From Epithemia pelagica (Eukaryota; Protista; Bacillariophyta), in the NCBI GenBank assembly GCA_946965045.2, contig OX337231.1, forward strand, positions 1,674,001-1,738,000: a stretch of DNA of 64,000 nt. Direction: 5' to 3'. Below the pieces are notes generated by a model that worked only from the letters and a program-made list of their open reading frames with translations, was not told where the DNA came from and ran no database searches. Every line of letters begins with the position of its first letter. Position 1 is the stretch's first letter. This document shows, in pieces, positions 11,854 through 62,859 of this stretch. The position numbers and the translations under genes were made by a program.

Positions 11854-11867
11854 TGAGACTGTTAATC
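11854..11867 (-). promoter_or_regulatory. Putative primer-binding site complementary to a tRNA-Asn(GUU) anticodon arm
   Basis: Immediately after the 5' LTR end (CA) the minus strand reads GATTAACAGTCTCA. Its complement TGAGA-CTGTTAA-TC reads as a 5-nt stem, a 7-nt GTT anticodon loop and the start of the 3' stem. There is no TGG-type PBS. Confidence 0.6.
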
Positions 11868-12390
11868 TGACAAAAGATGAAGGACTCCGGTCGTTACGAC
11901 ACAACAATCAAAGATACAACAAAGCGTTAGACAATTCAAGGCACCAACCACGTAGCCAATCCCCCACGGGTCAAGGAAAAGGCCAACAACTACTAGAAGA
12001 GTAGGTAGGACACAAAGAGATGTGATGATGATGCTTTTTAGAATTGTGAGTGTTATCGTCTATGTTAGTGCTCGTTGTTGTTGTTTCCCCTTTTCCATCC
12101 ATTTGTACTAGGTACGTAGAAATCTACACGCAGCATTGCTGGTTCGTGTGCATCTGACATCTAGATCGCATTCAATCGTCCCAAGATATCGCACATGTTC
12201 ATGGATGATGTCTAGCTCATGTCCAAGGCCATTGAAAGCGCCTCCTATCGTATTCCCTTTCTCCCCATTGTCTAAACTACGATCTACATGTGCTAGGTGT
12301 TTGTATATTATGACGTCACAGCCAGATGAAACCACTAGGTATTGATCGTGACTCATCGTACGATCAGTCACGGTCATCTACCTTGTGCGA
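11868..12390 (-). repeat. 5' LTR (523 bp)
   Basis: Identical to 4672-5194. Contains a TGACGTCA palindrome at 12311-12318. Confidence 0.95.
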
Positions 12391-12665
12391 TTTCAGATTG
12401 CTACTTTATTTATAGATAAATGCCAGGTGGAATTCTAAAGTCTTTGGAGATAACTTTAATATAGCCTCCGAACATTTCTAAGCTCATAGTTCGCAGGGAA
12501 CCGGCGGGTTTCCGGAGACTTGAACCCCAGGAAGAGTGAAACTCATAGGGAAAGGGGAACGTCGTGTTTAAAATTTTTAATTTTTCTAGTCGTAGAATAC
12601 CGGACCCGAGCGAAAGAGTTTGCCCGAGGAAAAGAGGCAACAAACTGACAAGATCATGCTCTCAA

Positions 12666-14249
12666 ATGGACCAGCCAAGGTTCTCGGACCGTAGCTCAAA
12701 CAAACCAGAGCAAGCAAACGCAACGGAGCAAACTAATATGAGGGAACAACCGAATCGTAATGCGCTCTTCTTCTCTGCCTCAGCTCTTAGCCCTGTGATG
12801 CAACCGCCACCACAGGTTTCGGGGGATCATTTCAGGAGTATGATGGAACCTAACGTTGGGATGCCTCTTTTGATGCATCCAGAAGACAAGCTGAAATCAT
12901 CAGGCAAACAGAAAACTCAAGAATTACCTCAAGTATTTCCAGAAAAACTGGATCCAAACATGCACATGCTTTCTCCAGAGCAAAAGGGTGCACGCTGGCA
13001 TCATCAGCACTCGATTTCACAAGACTTACAGTCGGACGGACAGCATGGGCAAGATGATTTGGCATTTGCGACAACAGACGGGGGATCTAACGAGAGGCCC
13101 AACGATAACCGCGGATATGCGTCCAATGATCCTTTTTCAGCCGATGGAGAACCTTTACCGGCCCATGACGTACAACGTCAACCAGGTGGTGGTGGAGCTC
13201 CCCCTCATGTGGAGAACCTGCTTCGAGAAATGCCATCAATAGGTTTCATAGAGAATCATGCCTCTATGGGAAATCTTAACAGTGCCCTGTGGACTGGGCT
13301 GGGTGGAGGGCGCTCGTCATCTACAGCTCAACGCTCATTGCGGAACAGCGGTCGGGATGAACTGTTGGGAAGTCTTCATTGCAGTCATCCTGGAGACCCA
13401 GGCCACAGTGGAGCTGCGGTAGCCCACCGTGGCTTGCAAATGACGAATAACCCATACGACCCTCTCTTGTATGGAAATTCGAGACAAAGCCAAGAGTTCT
13501 CGACTCATGGTCTTCAGCGCATGCTGTCATCAGAGCAAACTAATTCAACCATTGGTCGTGCTGTTGATCAACATTCACAAATGCAACTGAACTGGACGTC
13601 TCCTTATCAAAACCAATTATCCAATCTTCAGCAAAATATGAGAAACCAGCTCGCTGGATTCGAAGGAACATTTCAGCCCCAACTGCAACCTAGCCAGGAT
13701 TTGAGTCCTCAGGGAGAACCTCATGTTGCAGCGCCGGCATCTCCTCGCAAAGCTACGAAGAGAAGGCGAGCGAAAACCTTTCCCCAAAAGTTTATGGATA
13801 CACTGATAAAGCACGCTTCAGACGATGCTGTGAAGTGGTTACCGGATGGGAGGTCGTTTTTGATTGTTGACGACACAGCATTTGTCGAGAAAGTTCTCAG
13901 TCATGACTTTAAAGCATCGAAATACAGCAGCTTTGTTAGAAAGCTTCACAGATGGGGTTTTGTACGCATCACTTCAGGAGCGGGGAAAGACTGCTTTCAT
14001 CATCCCTTGTTCCAGAGGGATCGGTGCGAGTTGGCTGGCGAAATAACTGCAGTTCCACACCTGAAGCAACCACCAGCGAAAAGAGGACGACAAGATGGTT
14101 CGGGTCAAAAATCCGATCCAGAAGACACCGACATAGGTCAAGGTGTTCCTGAAAACGACAATGCTGTGGAAATACCGGAGCCAGACCCATTTCCTCCAGA
14201 CACGGAGGATTTGGGTCCAATCGATGATGTTTGGGATTCCGACGATTGA
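12666..14249 (+). CDS. Heat-shock-factor (HSF-type DNA-binding domain) transcription factor; long Q/S/G-rich N-terminus, DBD near the C-terminus
   Basis: FPQKFMDTL...VKWLPDGRSFLIVD...FVEKVL..DFKASKYSSFVRKLHRWGF...FHHPLFQRD is an HSF DBD. First ATG at 12666; the ORF track opens at 12564. Confidence 0.9.
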   Translation: MDQPRFSDRSSNKPEQANATEQTNMREQPNRNALFFSASALSPVMQPPPQVSGDHFRSMMEPNVGMPLLMHPEDKLKSSGKQKTQELPQVFPEKLDPNMHMLSPEQKGARWHHQHSISQDLQSDGQHGQDDLAFATTDGGSNERPNDNRGYASNDPFSADGEPLPAHDVQRQPGGGGAPPHVENLLREMPSIGFIENHASMGNLNSALWTGLGGGRSSSTAQRSLRNSGRDELLGSLHCSHPGDPGHSGAAVAHRGLQMTNNPYDPLLYGNSRQSQEFSTHGLQRMLSSEQTNSTIGRAVDQHSQMQLNWTSPYQNQLSNLQQNMRNQLAGFEGTFQPQLQPSQDLSPQGEPHVAAPASPRKATKRRRAKTFPQKFMDTLIKHASDDAVKWLPDGRSFLIVDDTAFVEKVLSHDFKASKYSSFVRKLHRWGFVRITSGAGKDCFHHPLFQRDRCELAGEITAVPHLKQPPAKRGRQDGSGQKSDPEDTDIGQGVPENDNAVEIPEPDPFPPDTEDLGPIDDVWDSDD

Positions 14250-14706
14250 CCGTAGTGTGTGATTCTCTTAGTTCGACAAACTCACCCAACGATCGTTTGC
14301 GCATGCAATGTTAAGCAAGGAAGAACATCAATACCATGCCCTCTCAAGTCGGATGCAGTTTTTGTTTTCTTCCTCAAACATAACAGCCTAGATATAGAGC
14401 AAGGTTTTCCCTTTTCACAAAAACTCAAAATGAACCCAGTTTGACGCATAAGCTTGTGCAGATATCATTTGGCAAGCAACTAGGTACTCGTAGAGAGGTA
14501 GGAGTAGCTCGGAAGCTCCTCTATTTGGAATTTGGAGTACCTTAGCTGGAATAGTGCTCTCCGACGGTCGACAGACAGAGGATACCCCAATTGCTATCCA
14601 CACAACATATCCGAAAAGTGCTGTTGGATCTCGTTCTGTCTCTCACCGGCAACAAGGTCAACGAGCCGTCAATCATCAGCACATTCTGATTTTGACCCTC
14701 CCTGCA

Positions 14707-15791
14707 ATGAGTGGACGAGGTTTTGGTCGAGGTGGTGGTCGAGGGGGTAGGTCCCCCGGCCGAGGAGGACGAGGTCGAGGCGGAGAAGGTCGAGGAAGAG
14801 GCCGCGGTGGCGGACGGTAGGTTCACAGCGCAGTTTCAGAATTCCAGGCAGTATGTCTTACATTGGTCCATATTGTTCCATAGAGGTGGAGGAGGACGCG
14901 GCGGCCGCGGTGGTCGTGGTAGTGGAAGAGGTGGTGGCCGTGGTGGCCGTGGCGGTGGCATGAAGGGTGGAAGCAAGGTTGTGGTCGAACCCCACCGTCA
15001 CGAAGGTATCTTTGTGGCTCGTGGAAAAGAAGATGCACTTGTAACACTAAACAGTACACCTGGTGTTGCGGTCTACGGGGAAAAGCGAATAACGGTAGAA
15101 GTACCTCCTACAAACGGTGACTCCACGCCACAGAAAGTTGAATATCGTGTTTGGAACCCGTTCCGATCGAAATGTACGTGACTGCCCTTAGAGTGGCGAA
15201 AGCCGCGTACTTTGATGGCTCATCTTACATGTTGCTCTATGATCAGTGGCAGCTGCAGTTTTGGGAGGTGTGGAGAGCATTTGGATCGAACCGGGGAGCA
15301 AAGTTCTGTACATTGGAGCAGCTGCTGGTACCAGTGTAAGTCACGTTTCCGATATAGTCGGTCCAAATGGGGCCGTATACGCAGTAGAATTCAGTCACCG
15401 CCCTGGCCGTGATTTGTTAGGTGTGGCAAAGCAACGAACAAACATTATTCCAATAATAGAAGATGCGCGACACCCACTGAAGTACAGGATGTTAATTGGT
15501 ATGGTTGACACTGTCTTTGCGGATGTGGCACAACCTGATCAAGCTCGAATTGTGGCTCTGAATTCGCACTATTTTTTGAAGAATGGAGGACACACTGTGA
15601 TAGCTATCAAAGCCTCATGTATTGACAGCACTGCAGCTCCTGAGGCAGTTTTTCGGAGAGAAGTGGACAAACTTAAGAACGAAAACTTCAAACCATTGGA
15701 ACAGCTCACACTGGAACCATACGAACGAGACCACTGCGTTATCATTGCTGAGTATCGACCAAAGAAAAAGAAAAAGAAGGATGAAAAGTAA
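14707..15791 (+). CDS. FBL: Fibrillarin, box C/D snoRNP rRNA 2'-O-methyltransferase; exons 14707-14816, 14884-15173, 15247-15791
   Basis: RGG-rich GAR domain, then [11 protein letters not shown]|[50 protein letters not shown] introns restore the frame. Confidence 0.97.
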
Positions 15792-16100
15792 ACTGATGTT
15801 ACCTCTGTGCGTTGAATCACATCAAGGGACGTGGAACGATGATATGGAGTTCTAATCAAAGAAAAGACGAGAGCTTCTGCAAGGTGTCCCTATTTATATC
15901 GTCAAACTATTAGTTTTCTCGTTCCTAGTTATCATCGATCATATGAATACAATCTGAAGAGAAAAGGAAGACACTAAACTTCTCGATAGTTCGATTGGGG
16001 CAAGAGTGGACTTCGCCGTTCGAAATATTATCAGTACTAAGTCATTGAATCCATGGCGTAAAATGAATGCTGCGATATGGAAACCGACCAACGAGACACC

Positions 16101-16631
16101 TCAAAGACCATAGTTAAGCCGAAAGACATCGTTGTGCACGTAGCTGAAAACAACAAAGATCTGCGTGAGGAGGCTACCTCTGCAAATGAAAAAAGAAAAT
16201 ACTGTCGCCACGTACTATGCGTTTGGTCCAGTGCTGATCAATTGAAATAGCTCACAAAAGTGCAGAGGGTTGCCACCATCGATTGAGATTGTTCCTGTCA
16301 CAAAAATTAGAATTGCACTGTTGCTATTACTGGGTTGTACATCGGTGGATTTCACTTGATGGGAAACCTTGCCAATTTGCTTCAGTTTTCCGATAATAGC
16401 TTCGGTGCCCTGGAATTGTTGTCCTTCGAATGTCATCATTGATGAAGCATTCTATCATTAACACAGAGAATGTCATTGGAAAAGACAAAATACAATATGA
16501 GTGCCGAAGATATCGGGGTCATCTTGTGCGCCAAGCACACTCACGTAAAGTCCTGCTAGATGCTGCGCATCTGTCGCAAAAGTTTTGTAGAAATGCTGAA
16601 TGAAGGCATTCGCAACCTCCTCCGCCGACAT
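16101..16631 (-). CDS. NTF2: Nuclear transport factor 2; exons 16631-16545, 16451-~16216, ~16144-16101
   Basis: Spliced product MSAEEVANAFIQHFY...LY|NASSMMTFEGQQFQG...ILIFVTG...FCELFQL...Y|YVHNDVFRLNYGL. Confidence 0.93.
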
Positions 16632-17498
16632 GACTCCTTGCTTCCCTCGGGCTTTTCTCGTGTTTCCATAAGCTGAATCCTCTATCGAAGCAGACAACAC
16701 CACCGTTTGCTTGGAAGCCTACGGTAGGCGCACGTACCGTCGCTCCCGTATCTGCGAGTCTTGAATGCGAGTCCCTTTCCTCTATTCCCCAGCGGGTGTT
16801 ACTTTAAGGGTGAACTTTGTTCTATCCACAAAACTACAACCTCCGAAACATACCCGCTGTAGGTTACAATGTTTTAGGAGTACTAGCTCTGGGAGCCGAG
16901 TCACGATCACACAAGACTCCCCTACCGATACTGTATTGTATTGTACAGTATGTATTGTAGTCCATATTCCATACGGTAACAGACAGTCCAGAATTGTCAC
17001 AAACGTCATGGTTGGCATTAATGTTTAAATTTCAAACTTCAAAATATCTGTTGTACAATATTCTCTACACTGCATTTGAAAAATCGCCAAGAACGTTATT
17101 TTCAAATGTGTTGGGTGTTGGATGTCGGATGCCATCATTATATGATATGCGTTGAATGTGAAGCTAACACCTGGAGAGCTGTTGAACCACTCCTTGTTGC
17201 AAATTGCAAAGCAAAGGCGACGACGAAAGAAAGCAAGGAACGAATCAAGGTATGTCAATGTATTGGGAAATGTGATGTATGAAAAAGTTGTATCGTATTC
17301 GAGAACGGAGCCGTTCGATGGTTCTCATTCGCAGCAAGCATCAGTGCATGGGCTGCTGTGCAGTCGTCGGTATCTAAACTGACGACATTTCACTCGAAAC
17401 ATTGTACACTTCGGTTTGGAGCTTCACCAATTGTTTTGAGGAGATTGCACACGAGAAAGGAACCCTCAGATTCTTTTTCTCTTTTGCACCCGATAAAG

Positions 17499-18038
17499 AT
17501 GAAGCATCAAAGATCATTACTTTTTCTCTCTTTCCTGTTGGTTCTGTTATTGCTGACAACAACGGTTGCCTCGGATGAAAGTGAAGAGGTCGTTTCTCTT
17601 GATGACACCCAACCATCTTTGGAAGCAGATGATGTGGCTCCTGTTGTGGCACCGGACGAGGACGTAGCAGTAGACGCCCCTATAGCAGATGTCGAAGAAG
17701 GTGCTGTAGATGTTGATGAAAGTGTGGAAGATTCTACGGAACAGGCGGAGGAGGAATCAATGGATGCAGCAGAGACTGTTGAAGAAGTTGCTGAAGAAGT
17801 CGAAGCCTCTGATGCAGCACCTGTGGACGAAAGCACTTCCGCTCCGTCTTCAAGCTACGAAAAGGCAAGCCCACTGTCCAAAGTAAAGGCGTTCTTTTCA
17901 AAGAACAAAAAGAAGGTGGCGGGAGGCGTTCTGGTAGCATGGGGTATCTCATTGGGCGTCGGTTGGGTGAGTTCGAGGGGTGGTAAGCCATCTCAGCAAG
18001 ACGTATATCCAGTCCCTTCCAAACAAAAAGGGCGTTAA
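17499..18038 (+). CDS. Hypothetical acidic secretory-pathway protein (signal peptide, E/D-rich body, C-terminal hydrophobic segment)
   Basis: MKHQRSLLFLSFLLVLLLLTTTVAS signal-like start; VAGGVLVAWGISLGVGWV TM-like stretch. Confidence 0.75.
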   Translation: MKHQRSLLFLSFLLVLLLLTTTVASDESEEVVSLDDTQPSLEADDVAPVVAPDEDVAVDAPIADVEEGAVDVDESVEDSTEQAEEESMDAAETVEEVAEEVEASDAAPVDESTSAPSSSYEKASPLSKVKAFFSKNKKKVAGGVLVAWGISLGVGWVSSRGGKPSQQDVYPVPSKQKGR

Positions 18039-18124
18039 TGACAACAAGAACATGAGAGTACTTCACCTGTAACAGTCATAATCATTGTGTCCAAAGAATC
18101 GGTCATTTGGATCAGGCTTGACTA

Positions 18125-18927
18125 TCAAGTGTCATAGCTGGAACTGTTGTTTGCGAGGGACTCAGGGTCATGATTGTTTTCTTCATCAAACCCTTGCGCG
18201 TCATTCTCAATGTCGTGATCGTGTTCATTGTCATCTTCGTTGTTCTCTTCGGAAGACAACTCAACGTGACTTTCCATCCTGCTAGGGTGGAGGCTGCTTT
18301 CCTCCTCCTCGTCACGTTGCGAACTTACCAGGGCCTTGTTCTTCCATTCAGTTCTATCGGTAGGGTCGAGGTCCTTCCATAGTTTGGCGACCAAGGCTAT
18401 TATCTCCCTACTCTGCAGGCCAGGGCTATTTTCCTTGACATCAGGATACTTTTCTCTCATAAAAAGCGTGTATCCAGTGTATTGTCGTTTTTGTCTTTTT
18501 GGGTTTGCTTTGCGTACACGGGCCTTTGGTTTCCGACCCCGTTTCTTGCCCTGGATAGTGAAAAAGGCAGGATGTTCACTCAGGTTAGCGTCAAGTCACC
18601 TTTTTTTAGAATTTGACTAATCCTGATTCCGTCAACAACCGTGACTCACCGCATACTTAGGAATACCCTTCTCATCCACAGGAGGAAGATCCTCTGGGAC
18701 CATCTCTAGCAACAAAAGGAGAAAGGATTTACATGAGCGAGCAAATACACACCTTCCCCAAGGCCCTGCCACGTACCGTATCTTTGTTGGATATCACGGG
18801 ATATTCCAAAAGACTGTGCCAACTGTTCAGCTTGAAATCGAAAGGACTTTGCCTTCTGTTCAGCCGCATCAGCTTCCGATCGCATGAAAGCAACCAGAGC
18901 TAGCGCTGAAGCCCGCTCTCTGCTCAT
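18125..18927 (-). CDS. HMG-box protein, multi-exon (5' end uncertain; may extend to ~19110)
   Basis: Last exon KRQYTGYTLFMREKYPDVKENSPGLQSREIIALVAKLWKDLDPTDRTEWKNKA is an HMG box, followed by an acidic tail. Upstream exons MSRERASAL... and MVPEDLPPVDEKGIPKYA are bounded by GT/AG. Confidence 0.85.
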
Positions 18928-19358
18928 TGGTGTTTCTGGTTTGAGAGAGATGGATTGCTATTAAGAGCAATTCGAGATGGTGAGTCTTGGCAAAGAAAAA
19001 ATGATGAAATCTCTGACCACTGACCACGACCAGGAAAAGCAAACGCGGAGAGCGCACACGCATCGCTGAATTGTGGGGGTGGTGGTTGGTGGTAGTCGTG
19101 ATACATCATAATCATACATCATACATACATTGTGCCGATTGCCTCCGGCCTACTACAATAGAAGATAGACGTCCATGGTTTAATGGTTGTATGGATTGGG
19201 GAGGTGGAGATTGGAGATATAAGTGGCGTGTGAGATTCATCGTGGATTGACGCAAACGAAAGTGTGGTTGACAATCATTGAACAGTCGTGGAATAAGCTT
19301 TCTTCATCATCTTGACATAAAACCCCGCTCGTACACCTTTTGCAGGGAGTTCTAGCAA

Positions 19359-20498
19359 ATGTCTTCACTTGCCTCATCGAGTTCACCATCTGTGAGCTTG
19401 ATTAATCGGAAAACAGATGTGGATTCTACGAACAAACGAAGGCGTAGTACTCGCGGAAACGCCTCAATTCGTGAACTCGCCCAGCACATTGTGAAAGGTG
19501 AAAAGAAAATTCTTATTGTAACTGGTGCAGGTGTCTCCGTTGCCTCTGGTGTTCGCCCTTTCCGAACATTCAATGGGAAATACCTGTCAGATCCCAAGAA
19601 GCATGGAGTTGTACCAACAACAGCAGGACTGTGGAATGATGTCATTTGGACAACGGCAACTCGAGAGGCCTTTCGGAAGGACCCTGCCAGATGGTACAAT
19701 GAGTTCTGGATTCCTCACTTCATGAAGGGAGGCGCAAAATTTCCAAACATCGGACATTATGCATTAAAAGAGATCCTGGAAGAATTCCCGAACGTGACAC
19801 AGATAACGCAGAATATTGATGGCCTGCAGGCAAATTCTGAAAGACTGATCGAAGCTCATGGACGTGTTGGGTTGTACAAGTGCCTTGGTGATGGTGACAG
19901 CGACACTGATTCAGATTCTGACGATGACGAAGATAGGCCTGTGCACTTAGGCCACCGCCGAAAGTCTCGTGAAAGAGTGAAACAAACGAAAACCCCAAAT
20001 CATTGTCCTTATCGATTCATGAAGTCGTTGGATGCGAGGCAGCTGGAACCGTCCGAGGTCCGCAATACTTTTTGCAAGTTACATACTTCAGGGGGGAAGG
20101 TAGAACCAATTGTCCAAGCACCCATCTGTCCCAGATGTGGAGCTCTTGTTCTTCCACAGGCTCTTCTCTTCGACGAAGGTTATCATTCGCACGCGTTCTA
20201 CCAGTTTCAAAGGATGGAATCCTTGCTGGAGCATACCGATGTTCTCGTTTTTTGTGGAACTTCGTTTAGTGTCCAGCTTACAGTATCAGCGCTTGATATT
20301 GCAAAAGAACGTCATCTGCCAGTCTACAATTTCAATCTGCATGATCAGCTTGCACCAACCCCACGTCTGAACTCCATCAACGTTATCGGCCCTGCAGTGG
20401 AAACACTTCCACTGTTGATGACTACATGTCGTGAAGTAAGAGATGAACTGCGTCAACGACCCTCACGATCATGCAGGAGAAGACGAACTACGAGTTGA
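19359..20498 (+). CDS. Sirtuin (Sir2-family NAD-dependent deacylase)
   Basis: ILIVTGAGVSVASGVRPFR, ITQNIDGL, EAHG, CPRC, LLFDE, GTSFSV motifs. Confidence 0.92.
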   Translation: MSSLASSSSPSVSLINRKTDVDSTNKRRRSTRGNASIRELAQHIVKGEKKILIVTGAGVSVASGVRPFRTFNGKYLSDPKKHGVVPTTAGLWNDVIWTTATREAFRKDPARWYNEFWIPHFMKGGAKFPNIGHYALKEILEEFPNVTQITQNIDGLQANSERLIEAHGRVGLYKCLGDGDSDTDSDSDDDEDRPVHLGHRRKSRERVKQTKTPNHCPYRFMKSLDARQLEPSEVRNTFCKLHTSGGKVEPIVQAPICPRCGALVLPQALLFDEGYHSHAFYQFQRMESLLEHTDVLVFCGTSFSVQLTVSALDIAKERHLPVYNFNLHDQLAPTPRLNSINVIGPAVETLPLLMTTCREVRDELRQRPSRSCRRRRTTS

Positions 20499-50699: not shown

Positions 50700-51790
50700 G
50701 TTATGTATGATCATGGTGCAAACCGGTTTACTTGATCATACGGTCGTCGTTTTGGGCGGATGTCAACAAAACAAACAATTGTGCCACCAAATCCGTTCTT
50801 GTATTGAATTTAACAGAACGAAACAAGCAGTGGCGACAAGGGCCGGCCATCCATGAACAAGAGACGTTCTGGACATGCCGCTGTTGTCTGCAACGGAGGC
50901 ATATACGTGATGGGAGGATACAATGGAAACACTTTTATCGGACGGATTGATGCCAACGATTTGCTGCAATCGTCTTTAGCAACAAGCAACGCACACGAGA
51001 GCCATTGGACGACATTAAATTGTCGCTTATCAACGGAACGAACAGGATGTTGTGCTGTTGCAGTTCACAATCGATATATCGTGGTAATGGGCGAACACAA
51101 CTGTGGGACAGTCTTAAAGTCGGTGGATATCATTGATACCAGCAACCAAACTCTCATTGTGGGGCCAAATATGAACGTTCCACGAGTATTATGTGCCAGT
51201 GCGGTCGTTGGCCACCGTATCTTTGTCGTTGGAGGCTCGACAGTAGAGTATTTGGACTTTGGAACGCCTAGTGTCAATGGGGACAGTCTAAAAGTCGGTG
51301 GATATCATTGATACCAGCAACCAAACTCTCATTGTGGGGCCAAATATGAACGTTCCACGAGTATTATGTGCCAGTGCGGTCGTTGGCCACCGTATCTTTG
51401 TCGTTGGAGGCTCGACAGTAGAGTATTTGGACTTTGGAACGCCTAGTGTCAATGAGGAGAGAAACGACACTCTGCCTCCATTCATTTCATCCTTTTCGGG
51501 CTGGACAACTCATTCCCGATCTGGAACTTTCCGACCCCCGACTGTCTTGTGCAATGGTTAACATGGGATCCTGTCTGGTGGTGGCGGGAGGAAGTCATCA
51601 AACCGTGGAAGTCTTGGACACGAAGCGCAACCGCATCTGGAATCTCCCACCATTCGAATATGGCCGTAAAGACTGCACTATGGTGACTGCTGCCAATCAA
51701 GTTGCCGTGATTGGTGGAGTTGTCAATCCATCCTGTGCGACATTTGGAATCGTGGACAAGAATACATTGGACGAGACACCGCAATGATTG
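50700..51790 (+). pseudogene. Kelch-repeat gene copy 1 (frameshifted; 175-bp internal tandem duplication)
   Basis: RSGHAAVVCNGGIYVMGGY, RTGCCAVAVHNRYIVVMG and CASAVVGHRIFVVGG are spread over several frames. Confidence 0.8.
51105..51454. repeat. 175-bp tandem duplication (51105-51279 / 51280-51454)
   Basis: Near-identical units starting gggacagtct(t/a)aaagtcgg. One mismatch seen; length is not a multiple of 3. Confidence 0.9.
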
Positions 51791-52699: not shown

Positions 52700-53860
52700 T
52701 AGATGGATGGCGAGAGCGTCATGCTACGGTCGTACTGGATCATACGGTCGTCGTGATGGGAGGCCTGAAACAAGAAGGTGCCACCAATTCCGCTCTTGTA
52801 CTGAATTTGGCAGAACCAGAAAAACAGTGGCAAGAAGGACCGCCTATGGACCAGAAACGTTATAGACATGCTGCTGTTGTGTGCAACGGAGCCGTGTACG
52901 TGCTGGGGGGATTCAGTGGATTTTCAAATCTCGATTGCATGGAACGAATTGATTCCAATGATTTGCTTCAACCATCTACGACATCGAGTAATTCAAAAAA
53001 GAATCATTGGACGAAATTGAAATGCCGATTATCAACGGGACGATATGGCTGTTGTGCTGTTGCGATGAAGAATCGATACATTGCTGTAATGGGTGGACGG
53101 GATGGAGGGCAAAACTTGTCGTCGGTGGATATTCTTAATACGAGCAACCAAACTGTCATTGCGGGGCCAAATATGAACGTTCCACGACTATGGTGTGCCA
53201 GTGCGGTCGTTGGCCACCGCATCTTTGTCGTTGGAGGCTCCACAACAAACACTTCGGTAGAGTATTTGGACTTTGGAAAGCCTAGTGACAATAAAGAGAG
53301 AAACTTCACTCTGTCTACATTCATTTCCTCCTTGTCTGGCTGGACGACTCACTCTGATCTGGTAGTTTCCGCCTCGCGACAGACTTGTGCAGTGGTTACC
53401 GTGGGATCCTGTCTTGTGGTCAGGTGATGAAAAACAATCGAACTGTGGAAATATAGGATACGCATCACAACCGAATGTGGAATCTCCCACCATTCGAAGA
53501 TGGTCTTGATAACTACAGTGTGGTGGCTGTTGCCAATTAAGTTGCCGTGATTGGTGGATGGAATAATCCATCCTGTGCGACATTACGACTCATGGACAAG
53601 AATACGTGGTGTTTTCGTCAGCTCTGTGAGCAGGAGCCGTACGGATGGTTTCATTCTCTGGAAAGATCGGGCAATGGAGATGTCGACTCTTGAACGAATG
53701 TTGACCAATACATGATTGTCATTGTGATAAAGCGCAGGATGGCAGTCGAAATGTACAACTGGTTACACCGCCAAGGGCCCGGAAACTACATCACGGCCAT
53801 TATATACGCTCGTACAAAACGGACATTGTATCCATCTTTAGCTACACACTGTAAATCATG
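52700..53860 (+). pseudogene. Kelch-repeat gene copy 2 (paralogue of copy 1, frameshifted after 53425)
   Basis: ORF 52753-53427 has RYRHAAVVCNGAVYVLGG and RYGCCAVAMKNRYIAVMGG. Homology continues out of frame to WCFRQLCEQEP. Confidence 0.78.
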
Positions 53861-54420
53861 GAACTGAATGAAAAGCGTTTAATCGCTATACCTATACACG
53901 AGTGGCTTGCATTGTCGAAAAATCATTCCAGTAGATGAGATGTGCAACTCCAAGGTGTCTATGAATGGTAGGAGAGTATGACGTAGGTCGTTGATGCTGC
54001 TCGGAGATGGTCTGCAGTGAGAGATTCTACCGGCTCCGTTGCAACTGGAGACGACACCATGAGAAACTTTTGTTGGTTGGTGCACCCTAATGATTCCCCC
54101 ATTTCGTGCACGGTTGGACTTTGGTATTTCTTGCTACAACTATAGAACATCCTCAATTGGATGAAACCGATGGTGTCATTGCCGTGGAACCGACCGTGTT
54201 GAATTCCGTCTTGGTAAAATTGGACTTTGTGGGCTTTCCCGTGGCATTGACAACAAGTCAGGACACGTCCACCGTCCACCACTACGACATCGTCGTGTCG
54301 CAGCATTGCTCGTTCCATTGCCCATGCCTGAAAACAAATTACCTCTAGATGACAGACACGTTTGATTTGACATAAACTATACTACTACTCCTACCTGTCT
54401 TGTATACTTACTACTCCTAG

Positions 54421-54667
54421 TGCCTTACCTCCGGGTGTGCCCATTACGTGCGAAAATGTCCCGTTGGGCACAACATTTTAGGTAGATAGAACTCGATCAA
54501 TATTAGCCCTACGACAATGATCTGATGCATCTTACCAATCTTTAAGGCATCCTCTGTCACCATTTGATGCCCCATTTGGCCTACATAGGACATATGGGGG
54601 TCATAGGAGCGCCTCTACTAGAAGCTTGTGGTGTGTGCAACGTGTGTGGGCACATTATGGGCACATT
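54421..54667 (+). repeat. Left TIR/subterminal region with GGGCACA repeats
   Basis: Shared blocks with the right end: gtgtgcccattac, aaaatg, ccgttgggcaca, tagatagaac, gatcaatattag, catcctctgtcaccatt, gtcataggagc. Confidence 0.85.
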
Positions 54668-54709
54668 ATAGAAACTCATGTAAAGCTCGGCTTTTAGACT
54701 TACTACGTC

Positions 54710-55324
54710 CTAGTATTCGAACTTGTAGGCAACACTTGGCTCCTGAGTCTCAGAGAACTCAAAGGACAGGTTGCTATCGACACCAATTGACGAATTGCGC
54801 TTTCCAAATTTGCTGGACAAGTTTTCATTGGATGAATCATTTTCATTATTGTCGTCATCAAAGTTGCTTGGCATTTCCACGGACTTCCTTACAGTATCGG
54901 AACATTGCTGATTGTTGCATGATGTCTCAATGTTCTTGAAGCGCATCGTCATCATCAAGTCAAAGCAAGGGGGGGACGGAGATGAGGACAACTTCTTCTC
55001 GGGTGCTGGATACAAAACAGCAACATGATTCTTTTTGGGGACAATCTCGGCATGCACCGTCTTGGCTTCCATATCCTTGAAATCTGAAACGTCCATCGCC
55101 ACCTTCTCCTTTGCCTTCATGTTCTTTTTCTTGGTTGCCACTGCCTTCTTAGTTTTCGTCGTCTTTTTGCGATGCGACAACCGGTACGCGGGTTGGTTGG
55201 AAACGGAAACAGAAGGAGCAAGAATGGAGCCTGTGCACTGCGAAGCTGCATCAGCTCCTGAGGCTGCTTTGATGCGCGCTTGATAGCGCAAACTTGTACG
55301 ACGGCCGTTGATAGTTGTCGACAT
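54710..55324 (-). CDS. Transposon-internal ORF-A, 204 aa, Lys-rich, unknown function
   Basis: Open ORF with CCACCATG start context; no recognisable domain. Confidence 0.55.
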   Translation of the reverse strand: MSTTINGRRTSLRYQARIKAASGADAASQCTGSILAPSVSVSNQPAYRLSHRKKTTKTKKAVATKKKNMKAKEKVAMDVSDFKDMEAKTVHAEIVPKKNHVAVLYPAPEKKLSSSPSPPCFDLMMTMRFKNIETSCNNQQCSDTVRKSVEMPSNFDDDNNENDSSNENLSSKFGKRNSSIGVDSNLSFEFSETQEPSVAYKFEY

Positions 55325-55709
55325 GGTGGTATTCTCTTTCGCGGTGGTGTAACAGGAGATCCACGGAAAATATGAGGCAGATGTGGGTCGTGTCGGTTGG
55401 AATAGGTTCCGAACGGACCAAATGTCACGCCAGCCAACAAATTTTCCTTAATTAAGAAGTGTGCCATGAGGCGCGATGCCCGCACTCACAAATCTCAAAA
55501 CGAACACACATACTAGAACTAAAGCAAACAAGAACAACAAGTTCTGGAGTAGTGCTGCACCCATCGACCGCCCCACGTCCCGTCGTGGGTGCCGTACAGG
55601 CCAAGAGGACCTTGGCCCATCCTGGCCACAAACCTTTGGGTGTGGCCGCGGACGAATAGTAACTGGTTCCCACCAAGGTGGATTCTTCTTCTTCGCCTTC
55701 ATTGCGAAT

Positions 55710-55997
55710 GATGGCGGTGGTACGGCCAACAATCTCATAATGCAATTTCAAGCCGACATGCTCAATATTTCCGTGGTCAAACCCAAAATCAAGGAAACCA
55801 CGTCGCTTGGTGTCGCCTTTTGTGCCGGATTGGCCACGCGAGTTTGGGACAGTGTCGATGAAATAAAAACCTTGTGGGCCGTGTCCCAAAGCTACCTGCC
55901 CCGCATGACGGAGACGGAACGACACCGCAATTGGAGTGGATGGAACAAAGCGGTTTTGAAAAGTCTGGGGTGGATCGATCACGAAGACGAGGAGGAA
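55710..55997 (+). pseudogene. Captured C-terminal fragment of glycerol kinase (FGGY_C) inside the transposon
   Basis: DGGGTANNLIMQFQADMLNISVVKPKIKETTSLGVAFCAGLA..VW...W...Y.P.M.E.ER...W.GW.KAV..SLGW is the GlpK C-terminus. No N-terminal domain precedes it. Confidence 0.88.
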
Positions 55998-56730
55998 CAA
56001 ACCGACAAGAGACTACGACTACCGCCCGAGTGGAGCAATTCACCCGTGGCAATCGGAACCGGTTCCTCCAGAACTGGTTTGGTGCTGGCTGGCTTTTTGG
56101 AGTCGTCGATGTGGTTGCTGCTCATGACCGAATGACTCTTGCCATTCTTGGTTGCCGGAATCGCCTTGTTCTTGATGGGTTTCTGTGGCACTTCTTGCCG
56201 CAGACAAGACGGCTGTGGTGTCATCAAACGACTCTTGTCGTTGATGTTGTCGTGGTCGTTGTTGCGGCTGTGGTGCTTCTTGGTGACTTGGACGTCGTTG
56301 TGTCGGTTGTGGTGCTTGTTGTTGTGGTTGTGGTGCCTTGTTGGAGGAGGAGACAAGCGCCAATTCGGCAGCCAATATCATTTGCTTGGTATCCTGATTT
56401 TCTTGAAAATATTTTTGCGCCAACACATCGAGAATTTTTCAAAGAGTATATTGCGTTCGTCTTCATTCATGCCCGTGTGGTGGAATAGGACGGAACTTGC
56501 TGGACGACCCCTTGATCGTTTGACTTGGCGACACTCTTGGTATTACTTTGGTGGGCCACCTTTTTGCCTATGTCAATTTCAATATGACAATCAAGAAATT
56601 GACTATGTAGATATACTTGTAGTTCGAACTGTATGGATGTAACTTCAAATAGAACTATGTATTGGTCTTACCTAATCATGTATTGTGTATTTTCATTTTC
56701 ATACTAAATCATAGAGCAATCGTCGTGAAA

Positions 56731-57291
56731 TCAAGCTGTGTTCTGTTGTTGCATTCGGAATCTGTGCTCTTCAACACAGGTGCGGTTCATCCCAGGACGA
56801 ATCCTGTTACCGTTGCATAGTCCAATACCTTTGATGGTCTTGATGATCTCGTCCGTTCCCGGTACCTTGCGGGTCTTCGTTTTAGCAAGACAAACAGGAT
56901 GTGCGCAAATTGCTCTCGTCTTCATAAAACAGATGACGCATCGACTTGTGCTTGGTTGTTCGTTGCCATCCGCATCCTGGACTTGTTTGGGATTTGGCAT
57001 GGGCCTGTGAGACAAGTGAGACAAGAATCCAGCTGGTGGATCTCCAGAGTGGCAAAGAAGACACGACACAGTACCATCATCCTGAACTGTCAATGACTCT
57101 GCTGGGGAAACACTGGGGAGCGAATCAACAACTGAAATCAGAAGGCATCTGCTCGAGCCAGCACCAGCAGTTGAGGCCCCGAACTGAGCCATAACAGCCT
57201 CCTCCGGCATCTTCTTCGCGTATCGCATGGCCTGTTCTGTAGGCGACTCAGCGTCGACGACATTGGAAGCAATATTGGGGCTTGTCGACAT
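56731..57291 (-). CDS. ORF-B: stand-alone copy of the transposase C-terminal Cys-rich domain, 186 aa
   Basis: Paralogous to the last ~200 aa of the transposase (RCVIC.MKTRA.C.HP.CLAK...GLC...TCVEEHRF). It starts from a duplicated ORF-A ATG context. Confidence 0.8.
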   Translation of the reverse strand: MSTSPNIASNVVDAESPTEQAMRYAKKMPEEAVMAQFGASTAGAGSSRCLLISVVDSLPSVSPAESLTVQDDGTVSCLLCHSGDPPAGFLSHLSHRPMPNPKQVQDADGNEQPSTSRCVICFMKTRAICAHPVCLAKTKTRKVPGTDEIIKTIKGIGLCNGNRIRPGMNRTCVEEHRFRMQQQNTA

Positions 57292-57673
57292 GGTGGTCTT
57301 CTTCTCTTTTGTGGTGTTGTTGTTCCTGTAACAGGAGATCCACGGAAAATATGAGGCCGATGTGTGTCGTGTCGGTTGGAATAGGTTCCGAACGGACCAA
57401 ATGTCACGCCAGCCAACAAATTTTCCTTAATTAAGAAGTGCGCCATGAGGCGCGAAAAACTCGTCCATGCCCGCACTCACAAATCTCAAAATGAACACAC
57501 ATACTAGAACTAAAGCAAACAAGAACAACAAGTTCTGGAGTAGTGCTGCACCGATCGACAGACACAGTAGTTCTTTGGTGGAAAGACGGCACGACGGCAA
57601 GTAAGTAAACAATGCTGTTAGAACTGTCTCCCCAACAAGCACTCACACTTGTTGCATCACTTTGTCCAGAAAG

Positions 57674-58249
57674 ATGAATTCAACGAAAGGAAGCAAGAGG
57701 TTTGAGACGATGAAACTCGTCAATGGGTTCACAGTGGTTTGTGATGGTGGTCAGTCGCTTGAAACAAAGGGGGAAACAGTGACAGTGTTTGGAGAAGCGG
57801 GGGTGAATGTGTACCTGAAGAGTGCCGGAGAATGTTCTGCTGATGGTCGGTTGATTGTTGATCGTGGTGTGTTGCTGTTGCAGCGAACTTATTTGTCTCG
57901 AGTCAACACGAATGCAGTCTCAATTCGCTTCTTTGACCGCACCAAAAAGGATGATTCTGTCCCAGAGCTCGTCATCCCACTGCAATATATCAACAATCAA
58001 CTTGATACGACGATTCTTCAGTCAAGTAGTGGCAAAGTTGTCAAGAGCAAGATCGTGATTGCTACGACACACTCACTTAACACCGTGATGACAATGGAGC
58101 CCATGGTTGTCACGGTTAAGATGAGTGTCGTTGGAGCTACGACGTTTCTGAAACTTCTCAACGAGAAGCTAGTATGCAAATCTGTTGAGGGAAAAGACGA
58201 TGACAAGACTGCCAATATTGCGATCAAGAAACTGACTACTCCTATGTAG
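57674..58249 (+). CDS. Transposon-internal ORF-C, ~191 aa, beta-rich, unknown function; convergent with the transposase
   Basis: Uninterrupted ORF with globular-looking V/I/T-rich composition; stop 124 bp from the transposase stop. Confidence 0.65.
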   Translation: MNSTKGSKRFETMKLVNGFTVVCDGGQSLETKGETVTVFGEAGVNVYLKSAGECSADGRLIVDRGVLLLQRTYLSRVNTNAVSIRFFDRTKKDDSVPELVIPLQYINNQLDTTILQSSSGKVVKSKIVIATTHSLNTVMTMEPMVVTVKMSVVGATTFLKLLNEKLVCKSVEGKDDDKTANIAIKKLTTPM

Positions 58250-58373
58250 GATATACGTGCACTAGTTCGAACTGTATGGATGTAACTTCAAATAGAACTA
58301 TGTATTGGTCTTACCTAATCATGTATTGTGTATTTTCATTTTCATACTAAATCATAGAGCAATCGTCGTGAAA

Positions 58374-61300
58374 TCAAGCTGTGTTCTGTTGTTGCATTCG
58401 GAGGATCTCCATTTGGAATCTGTGCTCTTCAACACAGGTGCGGGTCATCCCAGAACGAATCTTGTTATCGTTGCATAGTCCAATACCTTTGAGGGTCTTG
58501 GTCTCGTCCGTTCCCAGTACCTTGCGGGTCTTCGTTTTTGCAAGACAAGCAGGATGTCCGCAAAGTGCTCTCGTCTTCATGCGACAGATGACGCATCGAC
58601 GTGCGCTTGGACGTATCTTGCCATCCGCATCCTGGACTCGTTCGGGATTTGGGATGGGCTTGTGAGAAAAGACTCCAGATGGTGGAACTCCAGAGTCGCA
58701 AGGAATACACGCCGTGGCATCATCATCCTGAACCGTCAATGACTCCGTTGGGGAAACGATGGGGTGCTGTGTGGATTGTAAATCAACAACTGAAATCGGA
58801 GGACATCGGCTCAAGCCAGGAGCACTAGCAGTTGAGGCCCCAAACTGAGCCATAAACGCCTCCTCCAGCATCTGCTTTGCGAATTGTGTGGCCTGTTCTG
58901 TCAGCGACCTTTGCTGAAGTCCAGCAGTACCATCCTCAGCTTCAACGACATTTGAAGCAATATTAGGTTGGGCCTGACCTCGACGGTCAAGGTTGTTGTT
59001 TAACTGGTTGTGGGAAAGATCCCATGCCAAACAATCTGCAAAATACTCCACTCCCGACGAGACTGGAGACTGCCTGCCACCCAAATGGTACTTGGTCGCC
59101 AAAAAACAATCAACCACCGTGATACCGATTATCGTGGTGATAAGCCTAAACCATGGGTTTGGCGTTTTCCACAGTATTTCAAGCCGCAACACACCCTGTC
59201 GAAGGTGATTGTGGACATCAATGAGATTGGCCGCTCCAAAATAGACAGACAAACATTTCGGCCGTAGGACGCGGCGCTCTCTGACTTTGCCATGTTCATC
59301 AGCGAACCTGGCCACGTAGGGGAGGCCAGGCTCCGTAGTCTCCGCATCTCTTGACATGGCGAAAAAGAGAGTCTTGCGTGAATTGTATTTGTATGCGATG
59401 GCAACCAGGTTGACGTTGGTACCTGGTGCCACGCTCTCCATCACAAGATACGATCCCGATGGAAAGGGTTCCATCTCCTTTTTCAATTCTTCTTGGGGGA
59501 ACAAGCCATTGTTGGTTTTGATGGAACAAATGACTTCGGGCGCATCCTGGTTGTTCCCCCGCACTTTGTCTACACACAGAGTGTAGGTCCGACGATCACG
59601 AGCTGTCGGCTCTCGTGGTTCACGGTACATGCACTTCATGGCTTCGACAAGCTTGACGCTGCCAAACCAAGAATCTGCACATACAAGGGGCCTTGTGCTT
59701 CCTTGGCTCTGAGCTTCAATACGCTCAAGCACTGACTGGCCAGAATATTCCGAGCCTTCCACCAATCGAAGCGACGTTCCTACCGTCATGCCTCCATCTG
59801 CCATAAACTTCTTGCGCCGCATTGGGATCTTCCCTTCCTGTATCTCAAGGAAGAGAAGACAACCTGTTGCTGTGTCACCAGAAACCTTTTTGAACAAAAC
59901 AAACGACAATCAAACGGATGAGTTGGTCACCTGCAAAGGCAGTCAGTTCGGAAAAGCAAACATTACCTTGAACTCCGTCCCCAATGGTTTGGGTTTGCGT
60001 TGGACGTAAGACAAATGGGGGAGTGTTGATGTCTTCGTTGTCCGTGGTTGGAACGCGCACATTGCCTCATCCAACGTAATTGTTGATGAGGCGGCAACTG
60101 TTTTCCGACGGTTGCTGTTGAAACCGTCAACCAGCGGTTTGATCTGGTTCCATTTCGCACCGTGGTTGTCCCCTTCAAAGGCACAGGGAAGAATCTCCTT
60201 GATGTCGAAGAACCGAGTCTTCGACATGAGATCCATGCCACCTTTGCTGGCATTCACTTTCGGAGAAAACTGACGATGTGAAGTTGACGACGTATCATCG
60301 AAGAGCCGAATACCACCTTTGTGGCAGGGTGCCGCTCCGATAAGAATGCCCCACCATGCCCACCACTCATGCTCTGTGACGCAACGGATATGGCGGCTTT
60401 GGACTCTGCCCTGATTGCGTTTGTTGATTGCTTCATTCAACCTATGCAGCTGCTCTCGCCAACTCCCTGTAAGACAAACATGCCATTAATACTGAGACCC
60501 TTTTCACTGTGACACCAACAGGAAACTCGACAATCAACGACTTACCTGGCCACATGTGGATCAGCAGACGCAGGAATGGAAAGTCATAGCGTTGGTTTGT
60601 TGTAGACAAGTTGCTGTGAGCAAATGACTGGCGAAAGTCAAAGCCAACAACACCAACACTCTCGAATTCTTCAACAAGGTTGTCGGGTACTGTATCGCCA
60701 TCAACAATTTGCCAAGTGAAACTCCGATTGTCATAAATCTTGCGCAGGTCATTCCGGCCTGTAAGCGCTAGTGTCTCTTCCTCGTCTCCGTCGAAGAGCA
60801 CATTCCACAAAGGAGTGCCAGGGATACTATCCGGATGCTTTTCAACCACAATTCCGAAACGTGGATTGTTCCTTTTGTTCTCCCGGACTCTGTCGCCAAT
60901 ATCAATACCATTTTCGCTGGGTGGCTCGAGGGTCACTGTCCAGTTTTCTTCTATCAGTTGTTTCTTTCTGTTTATATAGTTTGTATACCTGTTCCTGTGC
61001 TCCTCCCTGCTCTCAATTTCGTGTGCGAGTGCCAAACTGTTAGGATCAATGGCATCCTCGTCGTCCGAAAACAAAAACAGATAGTCCTCCAAGTCGTTGA
61101 AGTAGTCATCTAACGACACGGCTGATGCATTATCCTCATCTGTTGTGTGTTGGAAAGTGCGACCAGAAAGGTTCTGGTCATTCCTCGCGACTTCACGTTC
61201 CTGCTGCTCCACTGCTGGTGGACCAGCAATTCCAACGTCGGAAATCCAACTCCGGTCGTCGTCATTGAGAATTGTCTCGACCACGTTGTGCGCGTCCTCA

Positions 61301-62118
61301 CGAGTACGAACGACAGGGACGGTATCACCACCACGCTGACCGTCACCACCTGCATCCCCATCCATGACTTGGGTGGGTTCACTCCTGGTGTTGCTCGAAG
61401 TGTTGTTTGTGTGTGTCGTGTGTTCTCGTTGTTCGGCGCTCGGGCGTGCCATTGCACTGTCCTGCCCGTTGTTGTTGTTGTTGTTCTGCTCATCTTCATC
61501 CTGAGCCTGTTCACGGTTGCTCAATGCCACAACTTCAAATCCCTCGTCATCATCTCTTGTATTCTCGGCCGTCATGGCAATGTGTTCTTGTTGTTGTGTT
61601 CTTTGATGTTGCTGGTTGTGGTTCTCATTCCGCTGCTGCTGCTGACTACCACCCTGACGAGCAACAAGAACTTCAATACCTGTCTGATTCTCCCCTCCTT
61701 CTTGTTGAGGACCCTCGTTGTTGGCTGCACCAGATGATGCAAAGCTGTTAACAACAACCAAAGCCTCCTCCTCATTTGACGAGCCTTCTTGCTGTTGTTC
61801 TTGCCGTTGCTGTTGGTTGGAAGCAGCAGTGGTGGTAGTTGCTGTTGATGTTGGTGCTGTTGTTGCAGTTGTTCTTGCCACTGTCTGCTGCACTCGGTAT
61901 TCCCCAGGAAAGCTATCGCCTCGTTGTATCTTCTTCAGCTGATAAGAGGTCTTGTTCATCAGCTCACCTGTTCTACTGCCATCCCTCTTGTCAAGCCGCT
62001 CAACTTCCCATGACTTGTTCGCAAGGGCTCGGACAATTATCACAGGTTCCTTGCTGCCTCTGAGAAATGCCCTGGACCCAGGACCCAACCGACCTGTTGT
62101 TCCAACACCTGCTGGCAT
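58374..62118 (-). CDS. piggyBac-family (DDE_Tnp_1_7-like) transposase, ~1194 aa; exons 62118-60546, 60466-59967, 59885-58374
   Basis: Catalytic triad candidates ITLDEAM, CADSWFGSV and LIDVHNHLRQG; RKPKPLGTEFK motif; C-terminal Cys-rich domain. Two GT-AG introns (phase 1 and 0) join three ORF-track ORFs in frame (3585 nt). Confidence 0.9.
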
Positions 62119-62552
62119 TTTCTTTCAGTGTCCTCGTGCTTGTTGTTGTTGTTGTTGTCGTCGTCGTCACCTGCACCTCGTTGTCCTTGTGCTCAAGAAA
62201 TTGACACTTTTGGTAATGATCCTCATTACCAAAAGGTTCGATCTCATGAGCACATGCTCTTCATGATGAATAATCCCGATGGGGACTGTTCAAATGGAGG
62301 GAAAAACATGTAACTTGCCATTGTGTGGTCGTCTGTCGTCAGTTGATTGTCACAATCTTTTCTACAAAAATTCCCCCCTGGTCCCCCATGGAGTTCCGAT
62401 TGGTTCCGAATCAGCGCGGGTCCAGAGGAGTCCGGGACACGTTGAGAAAGCCGACCATGGCACAAAAAATGGCGCGAAAGTACTGCTTCGGATGCAGGTA
62501 ACATCACGACGTCCTATCATCGTCATAGGACTGTCATAGGACCTGCCGAAGC

Positions 62553-62819
62553 AATGTGCCCACTATGTCCCCACATGTGCCCACATGTGCCCACATGTCA
62601 AAAATCGAGCACAACCCTCCAATGGAGATGCTCCTATGACCTAGATATGTCATATATGGGTGTCATGTGGTATCCAATGGTGACAGAGGATGTCTTGAAG
62701 AAAAAGTTTGGGCATCCACATGTTGCCGTAGGCCTAATATTGATCATGTTCTATCTAGTTGAAAATATGTGCCCAACGGCCCATTTTGGCGTGTAATGGG
62801 CACACGGCTAGAGGAGGCA
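62553..62819 (-). repeat. Right TIR/subterminal region with 10-bp CCACATGTGC tandem units
   Basis: Inverted relative to 54421-54667; atgtgcccactatgtccccacatgtgcccacatgtgcccacatgt at 62553-62597. Confidence 0.85.
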
Positions 62820-62859
62820 CTAGGACTACTCAATACTGAACTCAGCCGTCCTAGTCCTA

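Follow-up and report, generated by a model that had tools for sequence, protein, structure and literature searches.

Structure and copies of the element

The analysed 64,000-nt stretch of the Epithemia pelagica genome (contig OX337231.1 of GCA_946965045.2, positions 1,674,001 to 1,738,000; hereafter the window, with all positions counted from its first nucleotide) contained a whole 8.4-kb piggyBac-like element on the minus strand (54416-62823), which, besides its transposase gene, carried a separate open reading frame (ORF) for a protein that repeats the Cys/His-rich tail of that transposase only. This frame, ORF-B, is the subject of the present analysis. The features downstream of the transposase gene were arranged in the following order: the 3' untranslated region (UTR) of the transposase, partner gene Y in antisense orientation, a promoter cassette (copy 2), ORF-B, a copy of the transposase 3' UTR, a spacer X, the same promoter cassette again (copy 1), partner gene A (ORF-A) and the other end of the element.

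The termini of the element read TGCC...GGCA, and in place of the TTAA target-site duplication of piggyBac a CTAG was present on both sides of all six complete copies inspected, that of the window included. The inverted ends were imperfect and about 250 bp long, different from the short CCC...GGG terminal inverted repeats of piggyBac: the 5' (transposase-side) end at 62575-62823 matched positions 54412-54666 in inverted orientation at 73% identity, and the 3' end occupied 54416-54666. Both ends carried TGGGCACA motifs; nine of the ten such sites in the window fell within the two ends, in a mirrored arrangement with sites at about 20, 49 and 231-262 nt from each tip, while the interior of the element had none, and the positions of the motifs in the ends were kept in both subfamilies of the element described below. 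These repeats are candidate binding sites. Just outside the element, the window contained a Kelch-repeat-like ORF, for which a paralogous copy with 75-81% identity was present about 2 kb upstream (50729-51765 and 52733-53605).

The transposase gene consisted of three exons on the minus strand. Exon 1 (60546-62118) encoded a low-complexity N-terminal region and ended at a GT donor at 60545, exon 2 (59967-60466, splice sites read) contained the start of the catalytic DDE_Tnp_1_7 domain (Pfam PF13843, 33.5 bits against a cut-off of 22.4, E=3.7e-8), and exon 3 (58374-59885), delimited from its ORF and from tail alignments, included the tail T (58374-58965) with its Cys/His domain. A Pfam search with exon 3 alone gave no match, and PF13843 was also recognized in the relatives P0011, P0020, P0022, P0028 and P0029. 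The two GT..AG introns, of 79 and 81 nt, restored the reading frame. Both introns occupied the same places in the second subfamily, with different lengths and sequences, and the junction of exons 2 and 3 was spanned by the uninterrupted homologue P0011. The 3' UTR of the transposase lay at 58213-58373.

With ORF-B as the query, a protein search found one 90% cluster only, and its five members all came from the same ENA assembly. From the loci of these members, together with one reached via the transposase cluster, another seven insertions (L001-L006 and L010) were obtained. The architecture, whose presence in other copies had been named as a check in the earlier note on this DNA (made from the sequence alone), thus recurs in another assembly. 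The eight insertions had unrelated flanks, and copies 98.9-99.5% identical to the element of the window occupied other flanks, again with CTAG at each side. An assembly artefact was ruled out by the identical layout at eight loci and in read-derived contigs. A search for sequencing runs covering the stretch gave three of genomic contigs, without informative joints, and none of RNA. In these contigs a known 3-nt variant of ORF-B was present and no frame-breaking variant appeared above the reporting threshold, albeit such contigs drop rare variants. The insertion L001 was adjoined by a 722-bp stretch (13244-13965) with 98.8% identity to positions 2130-2851 of the window, which looks like a dispersed repeat.

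The insertions belonged to two subfamilies. Subfamily 1 comprised the window, L001, L004, L006 and L010 with about 99% mutual identity, and subfamily 2 comprised L002, L003 and L005. The divergence between the two was very uneven along the element: the transposase half (58400-62823) had an identity of 58-78%, while the part from the 3' UTR to the far end (54416-58400) had an identity of 93-98%, with the switch near the stop codon and 3' UTR of the transposase. A pattern of this kind points to diverged elements that recombined in a modular way, the cargo half, ORF-B included, having been exchanged between two transposase lineages. In L010 the module of cassette, ORF-B and spacer X was tandemly duplicated (12264-16491), for which the two cassettes apparently underwent an unequal crossover, and the first transposase ORF was shortened.

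ORF-B and the internal duplications

The earlier note had described two internal duplications, one of the transposase 3' end and one of a promoter/ATG cassette, and self-BLAST recovered both of them at the positions given there. The tail duplication (58213-58908 and 56580-57247) had an identity of 83% over 708 columns and was extended by the repeat search to 57279 and 58967, respectively. The cassette duplication (57282-57559 and 55315-55568) had an identity of 88%, and the repeat search gave the same blocks. Cassette copy 2 (57282-57566), consisting of the A-proximal putative promoter, the 5' leader and the codons ATG-TCG-ACA, was placed ahead of ORF-B and was 88-98% identical to copy 1 (55315-55575), which stood ahead of ORF-A.

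According to the pairwise alignment, the junction reads ATG-TCG-ACA-A|GCCCCAATATT, and in the global alignment of the two minus-strand tails the homology starts at CC(C/T)AATATTGC, right behind ATG-TCG-ACA-A. The resulting ORF-B (56731-57291, minus strand) encodes 186 aa without an internal stop codon, aligns only to the C-terminal ~185 residues of the transposase and gave no DDE match; thus, the in-frame fusion of the ORF-A start to a tail lacking the catalytic core, as it had been proposed, was upheld by the alignment and by the ORF list. It is followed by its own 3' UTR (56580-56730, minus strand), which was copied from that of the transposase according to self-BLAST and alignment.

Six coding indels (27, 3, 12, 9, 3 and 15 nt) separated ORF-B from tail T, and every one of them was a multiple of three, including the 15-nt loss near the ORF-B stop codon already remarked upon in the earlier note. 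The 140-nt tract 56620-56759 was 100% identical to 58263-58402 and covered the last nine codons, the stop codon and about 110 nt of the 3' UTR, the duplicated part of the transposase 3' UTR (58263-58373) being identical throughout to that of ORF-B. Such a tract may have arisen by gene conversion, or else a 3'-end signal under constraint may have kept it identical. The same tract was near-identical in all subfamily-1 copies and 77-95% identical in subfamily 2, with the remainder of the tails at about 83%.

Because the ORF-B tail has the same orientation as the transposase tail and lies 1.65 kb downstream of it, with GT and AG dinucleotides near the borders of homology, it might serve the transposase as an alternative last exon, so that an isoform differing in its zinc domain would result instead of a stand-alone protein. 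However, the candidate donor-acceptor join is out of frame, the intron would need a length of about 1.7 kb compared to 79-95 nt in the real introns of the element, and ORF-B owns an ATG in the duplicated leader. The alternative exon was rejected on reading frame and intron size, and we regard this explanation as very improbable.

Origin of ORF-B

The partner genes of the element are older than ORF-B to judge from their distribution in related families. Gene Y (57674-58249, plus strand, antisense to the transposase), which was conserved in five such families, shared 46-71% amino acid identity with its positional counterparts in L007, L008 and L009, and gene A (54710-55324, minus strand, 204 aa), from which the promoter cassette and start codon were taken, had homologues behind Y in the same three families, with both termini conserved. 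In all three, the transposase was followed by the antisense Y homologue and the sense A homologue, and in L008 and L009 Y and A were divergent neighbours spaced by 340-500 nt. In a fourth family, L011, ORFs of matching size and strand were present at the places of Y and A (176 aa at that of A), a comparison made by size and position only. The ancestral plan would thus consist of the transposase, Y and A with a bidirectional intergenic region between the latter two. The description of the element as a two-component piggyBac in the earlier note, while correct in recognizing an additional gene, therefore understated its content, since relatives hold two conserved partner genes. The Y proteins are ~170-190 aa and the A proteins ~170-205 aa long, the latter with a conserved start MSxxINGRRxSLR and a conserved end GVDSNLSFEFxETQEP; neither Y nor A had a match in Pfam.

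In contrast to Y and A, the ORF-B and spacer X segments were absent from all four related families, and ORF-B thus belongs to an insert of ~2 kb that is particular to its lineage. Of the region between Y and A, the duplicated cassette took in the 250-280 nt closest to A, along with the first three codons of A, which points to an insertion after codon 3 of A. As read from this anatomy, a single event would have placed about 2 kb behind codon 3 of A, made up of a tail copied from a subfamily-1-type transposase (its final ~185 codons together with the 3' UTR), of filler DNA including a fragment of a host glycerol-kinase gene, of a second promoter-proximal cassette of A and of the first three codons of A. 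The outcome would be a complete transcription unit with promoter, ATG, tail ORF and 3' UTR. The divergence of the cassettes (12%) matched the synonymous divergence of the tails (dS 0.15), as would fit a single old event. The subfamily-1 tail (T1) was closer to ORF-B than any other tail found in the family, with 65% amino acid identity compared to 54%, 49% and 44% for the next three; a donor from another family was ruled out on these grounds.

The ORFs of spacer X (55569-56579) were not conserved, and a low-complexity stretch within it was (GTT)n-like. On its plus strand the spacer also held part of an FGGY/glycerol-kinase-type gene, a captured C-terminal fragment (55701-55835, Pfam FGGY_C, E=3.2e-9); by eye, the similarity seems to extend to about 56000. 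The ORF of the spacer was 219 aa long in one subfamily and 305 aa in the other, so the FGGY fragment resembles captured host filler DNA rather than a gene. The fragment was fused to an ATG within cassette copy 1, antisense to the transposase. In the L004 copy, spacer X was interrupted by an insertion of about 8.4 kb (11316-19699) with a Copia-type reverse transcriptase (RVT_2).

The layout of tail, 3' UTR, antisense-side spacer and cassette would also suit a head-to-tail dimer with an internal deletion, and in that case ORF-B would be the recent remnant of a transposase of another lineage, diverged yet functional, left when two related elements fused and lost their middle part, with the in-frame indels and retained ligands recording selection on the full-length protein. 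The cassettes diverged about as much as the tails, as such a fusion would have it, and recombination was evidently easy in this group, given the cargo halves common to the subfamilies and the crossover in L010. A dimer, however, would require spacer X to be homologous to Y, which it is not, and by this a plain tandem duplication or clean element dimer was ruled out; furthermore, no donor tail nearer than T1 was present among the family members found. The selection analysis below adds a further objection, and altogether this explanation appears improbable.

Selection on ORF-B

The pairwise ratio of nonsynonymous to synonymous divergence (dN/dS, NG86) was 1.06 between ORF-B and T1, compared to 0.22 between T1 and the subfamily-2 tail (T2). 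A three-branch codon likelihood model (GY94, F3x4) with T2 as the outgroup gave a ratio (omega) of ~0.25 for the branches of the transposase, while the best estimate for the ORF-B branch was 3.5-5.4. Twice the log-likelihood difference (2dlnL) amounted to 20-30 when omega on the ORF-B branch was fixed at 0.25, to 8-14 at 0.5 and to 4.8-8.6 at 0.7, so that all three values were rejected, while omega fixed at 1 was a borderline case (2dlnL 2.4-4.7, p about 0.12-0.03). ORF-B is, therefore, without transposase-like purifying selection, and its residues change on average at or above the neutral rate. The same three rejections argue against ORF-B as the remnant of a diverged functional transposase, for which transposase-like constraint would be recorded in the tail.

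Frame and zinc ligands, on the other hand, were kept beyond the neutral expectation. At least five of the six coding indels were assigned to the ORF-B branch, while only 6 of the 40 non-coding indels between the subfamilies were multiples of three. In neutral simulations with 36-60 substitutions, the probability that no stop codon appears was 0.14-0.29, that of keeping the eight core ligands was 0.11-0.26 and the joint probability was 0.02-0.08. Replacements on the ORF-B branch were rarer at columns identical in three transposase families (10/80 versus 12/42, p=0.045; in a second count 7/80 versus 10/42, p=0.029). Pure neutrality is unlikely, roughly 1e-3 as a product of partly dependent tests. 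The view that conservation within ORF-B argues for selection could thus be retained for the reading frame and the zinc ligands, but not for the protein as a whole, whose dN/dS gives no sign of purifying selection; its evolution is best described as one in which the frame stays open and the zinc scaffold is conserved, while the other residues change freely or adaptively. The module with ORF-B has, moreover, existed for ~5-10 times as long as the present copies and occurs in two transposase lineages, which are about 25% apart.

Putative function of the tail

The residues C77, C80, C118, C121, C129, H131, C134, C159, C172 and H176 were invariant in ORF-B and in the transposase tails. The wording of the earlier note that every Cys/His is kept goes slightly too far, one His common to T1 and T2 (QHP/EHP) being gone from ORF-B. 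An eight-ligand pattern (C-x2-C, C-x-H-x2-C, C, C-x3-H) was invariant or nearly so across 11 tails and fully present in ORF-B, which also retained every other invariant and near-invariant residue of the 11 tails and the conserved helix blocks upstream of the zinc domain. The tail therefore resembles the cysteine-rich domain (CRD) of the piggyBac transposase from T. ni, a Cys/His module placed C-terminally of the DDE_Tnp_1_7 core, in which two zinc ions would be held by eight putative ligands (PMC5861402, PMC7351741). The T. ni domain binds to end repeats of the transposon, and transposition cannot proceed without it (PMC5861402). The tail of the present element differs from this domain in the ligand order, C3HC3H with an insert of ~25 residues versus C5HC2 in the T. 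ni protein (PMC5861402), and in giving no match to PF13842, and binding to the ends is putative here. The identification of the tail as a piggyBac CRD would accordingly stand by position and ligand count, and not by sequence or fold. An AlphaFold model of the Cys/His domain had a mean pLDDT of 74 and a pTM of 0.60, and its best match in VIA-align was a weak one to a zf-HIT domain (Z 2.2); the model of the whole ORF-B had a pLDDT of 38.

We consider, with moderate confidence, that ORF-B is or recently was a selected, fast-evolving coding gene. How such a gene would act is more conjectural. Its transcription, DNA binding and effect on transposition, be it as the repressor or as the helper suggested in the earlier note, are predictions from the sequence. 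The protein would bind either the TGGGCACA repeats clustered in both ends or the tail of the transposase, and either mode of binding would alter the assembly of the transpososome, with competitive inhibition as the likeliest outcome. By analogy with the KP protein of the P element and InsA of IS1, ORF-B might thus modulate, and most likely inhibit, transposition by occupying the end repeats or by pairing with the tail of the transposase; we propose this tentatively, as a possibility below even chances. About as doubtful is the full proposal of a positively selected, tail-only regulator that binds TGGGCACA or the transposase tail, tunes transposition and represents the first built-in KP-/InsA-like gene described in the piggyBac superfamily. 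In this proposal ORF-B, which is present in both transposase lineages, came to be common to them by exchange of the cargo module as a whole.

A number of observations weigh against a functional ORF-B or against the role suggested for its tail. The dN/dS comparison with the transposase tail, recommended in the earlier note with a ratio of about 1 named among the unfavourable outcomes, turned out in part unfavourably: the ratio on the ORF-B branch was about 1 or more, which leaves most residues without constraint. Four of the five indels in the small non-coding parts of the duplication were also multiples of three, which weakens the indel argument, and the single tests of neutrality reached p values of only about 0.03-0.2 each. 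The counts of nonsynonymous and synonymous differences among copies (N:S) were 15:6 for ORF-B, close to neutral, although this test has little power, because the conserved gene A looks equally neutral with 19:6 (16:19 for Y). Breakage in other copies, likewise foreseen in the earlier note as evidence against the gene, was found in part: ORF-B was intact in seven of the eight insertions, while in L010 a frameshift was common to both of its tandem ORF-B copies. Neither ORF-B nor the 11 tails matched any Pfam family, PF13842 included, up to an E value of 10; the PDB gave chance matches only, both in a sequence search with exon 3 and in a profile search with the tail alignment; and Foldseek with the domain model found nothing in the PDB below an E value of 0.98, so that putative DNA binding is argued from position and ligand pattern only. 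Finally, no stand-alone tail gene was found in the related families or among 1.8 billion representative proteins. The exhaustive tail profile search returned nine proteins, and the two short matches among the candidates were both rejected as stand-alone tail genes: P0007, located directly behind transposase fragments in L007, looks like the tail of a broken transposase, and P0010 by its sequence looks like a retrotransposon-tail chimera. A scan of JGI metagenomes likewise revealed no stand-alone tail gene.

Much of this would be understandable if ORF-B were a harmless, non-functional by-product of aberrant gap repair or template switching, which would have placed a transposase tail, host filler DNA and a second cassette within gene A, and if its frame remained open by luck and by recent gene conversion from the selected transposase tail. 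Its dN/dS of about 1 or higher, both on its branch and among copies, the frameshift in L010, the modest neutral probability of an open frame and the non-coding indels, mostly multiples of three as well, agree with such an origin, as do the neighbouring spacer X, which with its captured glycerol-kinase fragment and variable ORF is clearly junk, and the 140-nt identical tract when taken as conversion. This tract, however, spans only the last ~9 codons and leaves the remainder of the tail unexplained. Five or six of six indels were frame-preserving against a baseline of 15-22%, and taken together with the retention of ligands and the depletion of replacements at conserved columns this brings pure neutrality to roughly 1e-3 or below. 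Nor would a by-product be expected to outlast the present copies as the module did or to ride in two transposase lineages. We therefore hold a non-functional ORF-B to be possible but rather unlikely.

If ORF-B is active as a selected gene, the element would provide a natural trans-acting modulator of a piggyBac-type transpososome, in a superfamily that is widely used as a genome-engineering tool, and an example of how a transposon makes a new gene at one stroke by joining a borrowed promoter to its own tail. Whether or not ORF-B is active, the locus records modular recombination of element halves, capture of a host fragment and cassette-mediated rearrangement in diatom piggyBac-like elements. 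The family has been mobile recently and has few copies, which makes it directly testable.

Comparison with known systems

Self-regulation by a transposase fragment that consists of the DNA-binding part only is a classic theme of the P element and of bacterial insertion sequences. In the literature searched no such case was found for piggyBac, and a separate, promoter-equipped tail gene within an autonomous piggyBac-type element was met neither there nor in the protein searches. ORF-B would be a variant of the truncated-transposase regulators, a known kind, and its novelty holds if it is functional.

The KP protein and the other type II repressors of the P element in Drosophila are truncated transposases that kept the site-specific DNA-binding part, lost the catalytic one and are thought to compete at the element ends. 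In ORF-B, similarly, the catalytic part is gone and the tail, its putative end-binding part, is kept. The two differ in several respects: KP derives from internally deleted, separate, non-autonomous copies, while ORF-B is an extra gene with a borrowed promoter inside an autonomous element; furthermore, the putative DNA-binding part of ORF-B is C-terminal, and its repressor activity is a prediction.

In bacteria, InsA of IS1, OrfA of IS911 and the inhibitor of Tn5 are shorter proteins that share sequence with the transposase and damp transposition. In contrast to ORF-B, which is a diverged duplicate, these short proteins are made from the same gene by frameshifting or from an alternative start. 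Moreover, the Tn5 inhibitor lacks the DNA-binding end, whereas ORF-B retains the tail.

Non-catalytic piggyBac paralogues, such as the PgmL partners in Paramecium, are known to work beside a catalytic protein (for the context of PiggyMac, see PMC3408717). Those are near full-length, domesticated host genes, while ORF-B is a 186-aa tail within a still-mobile element.

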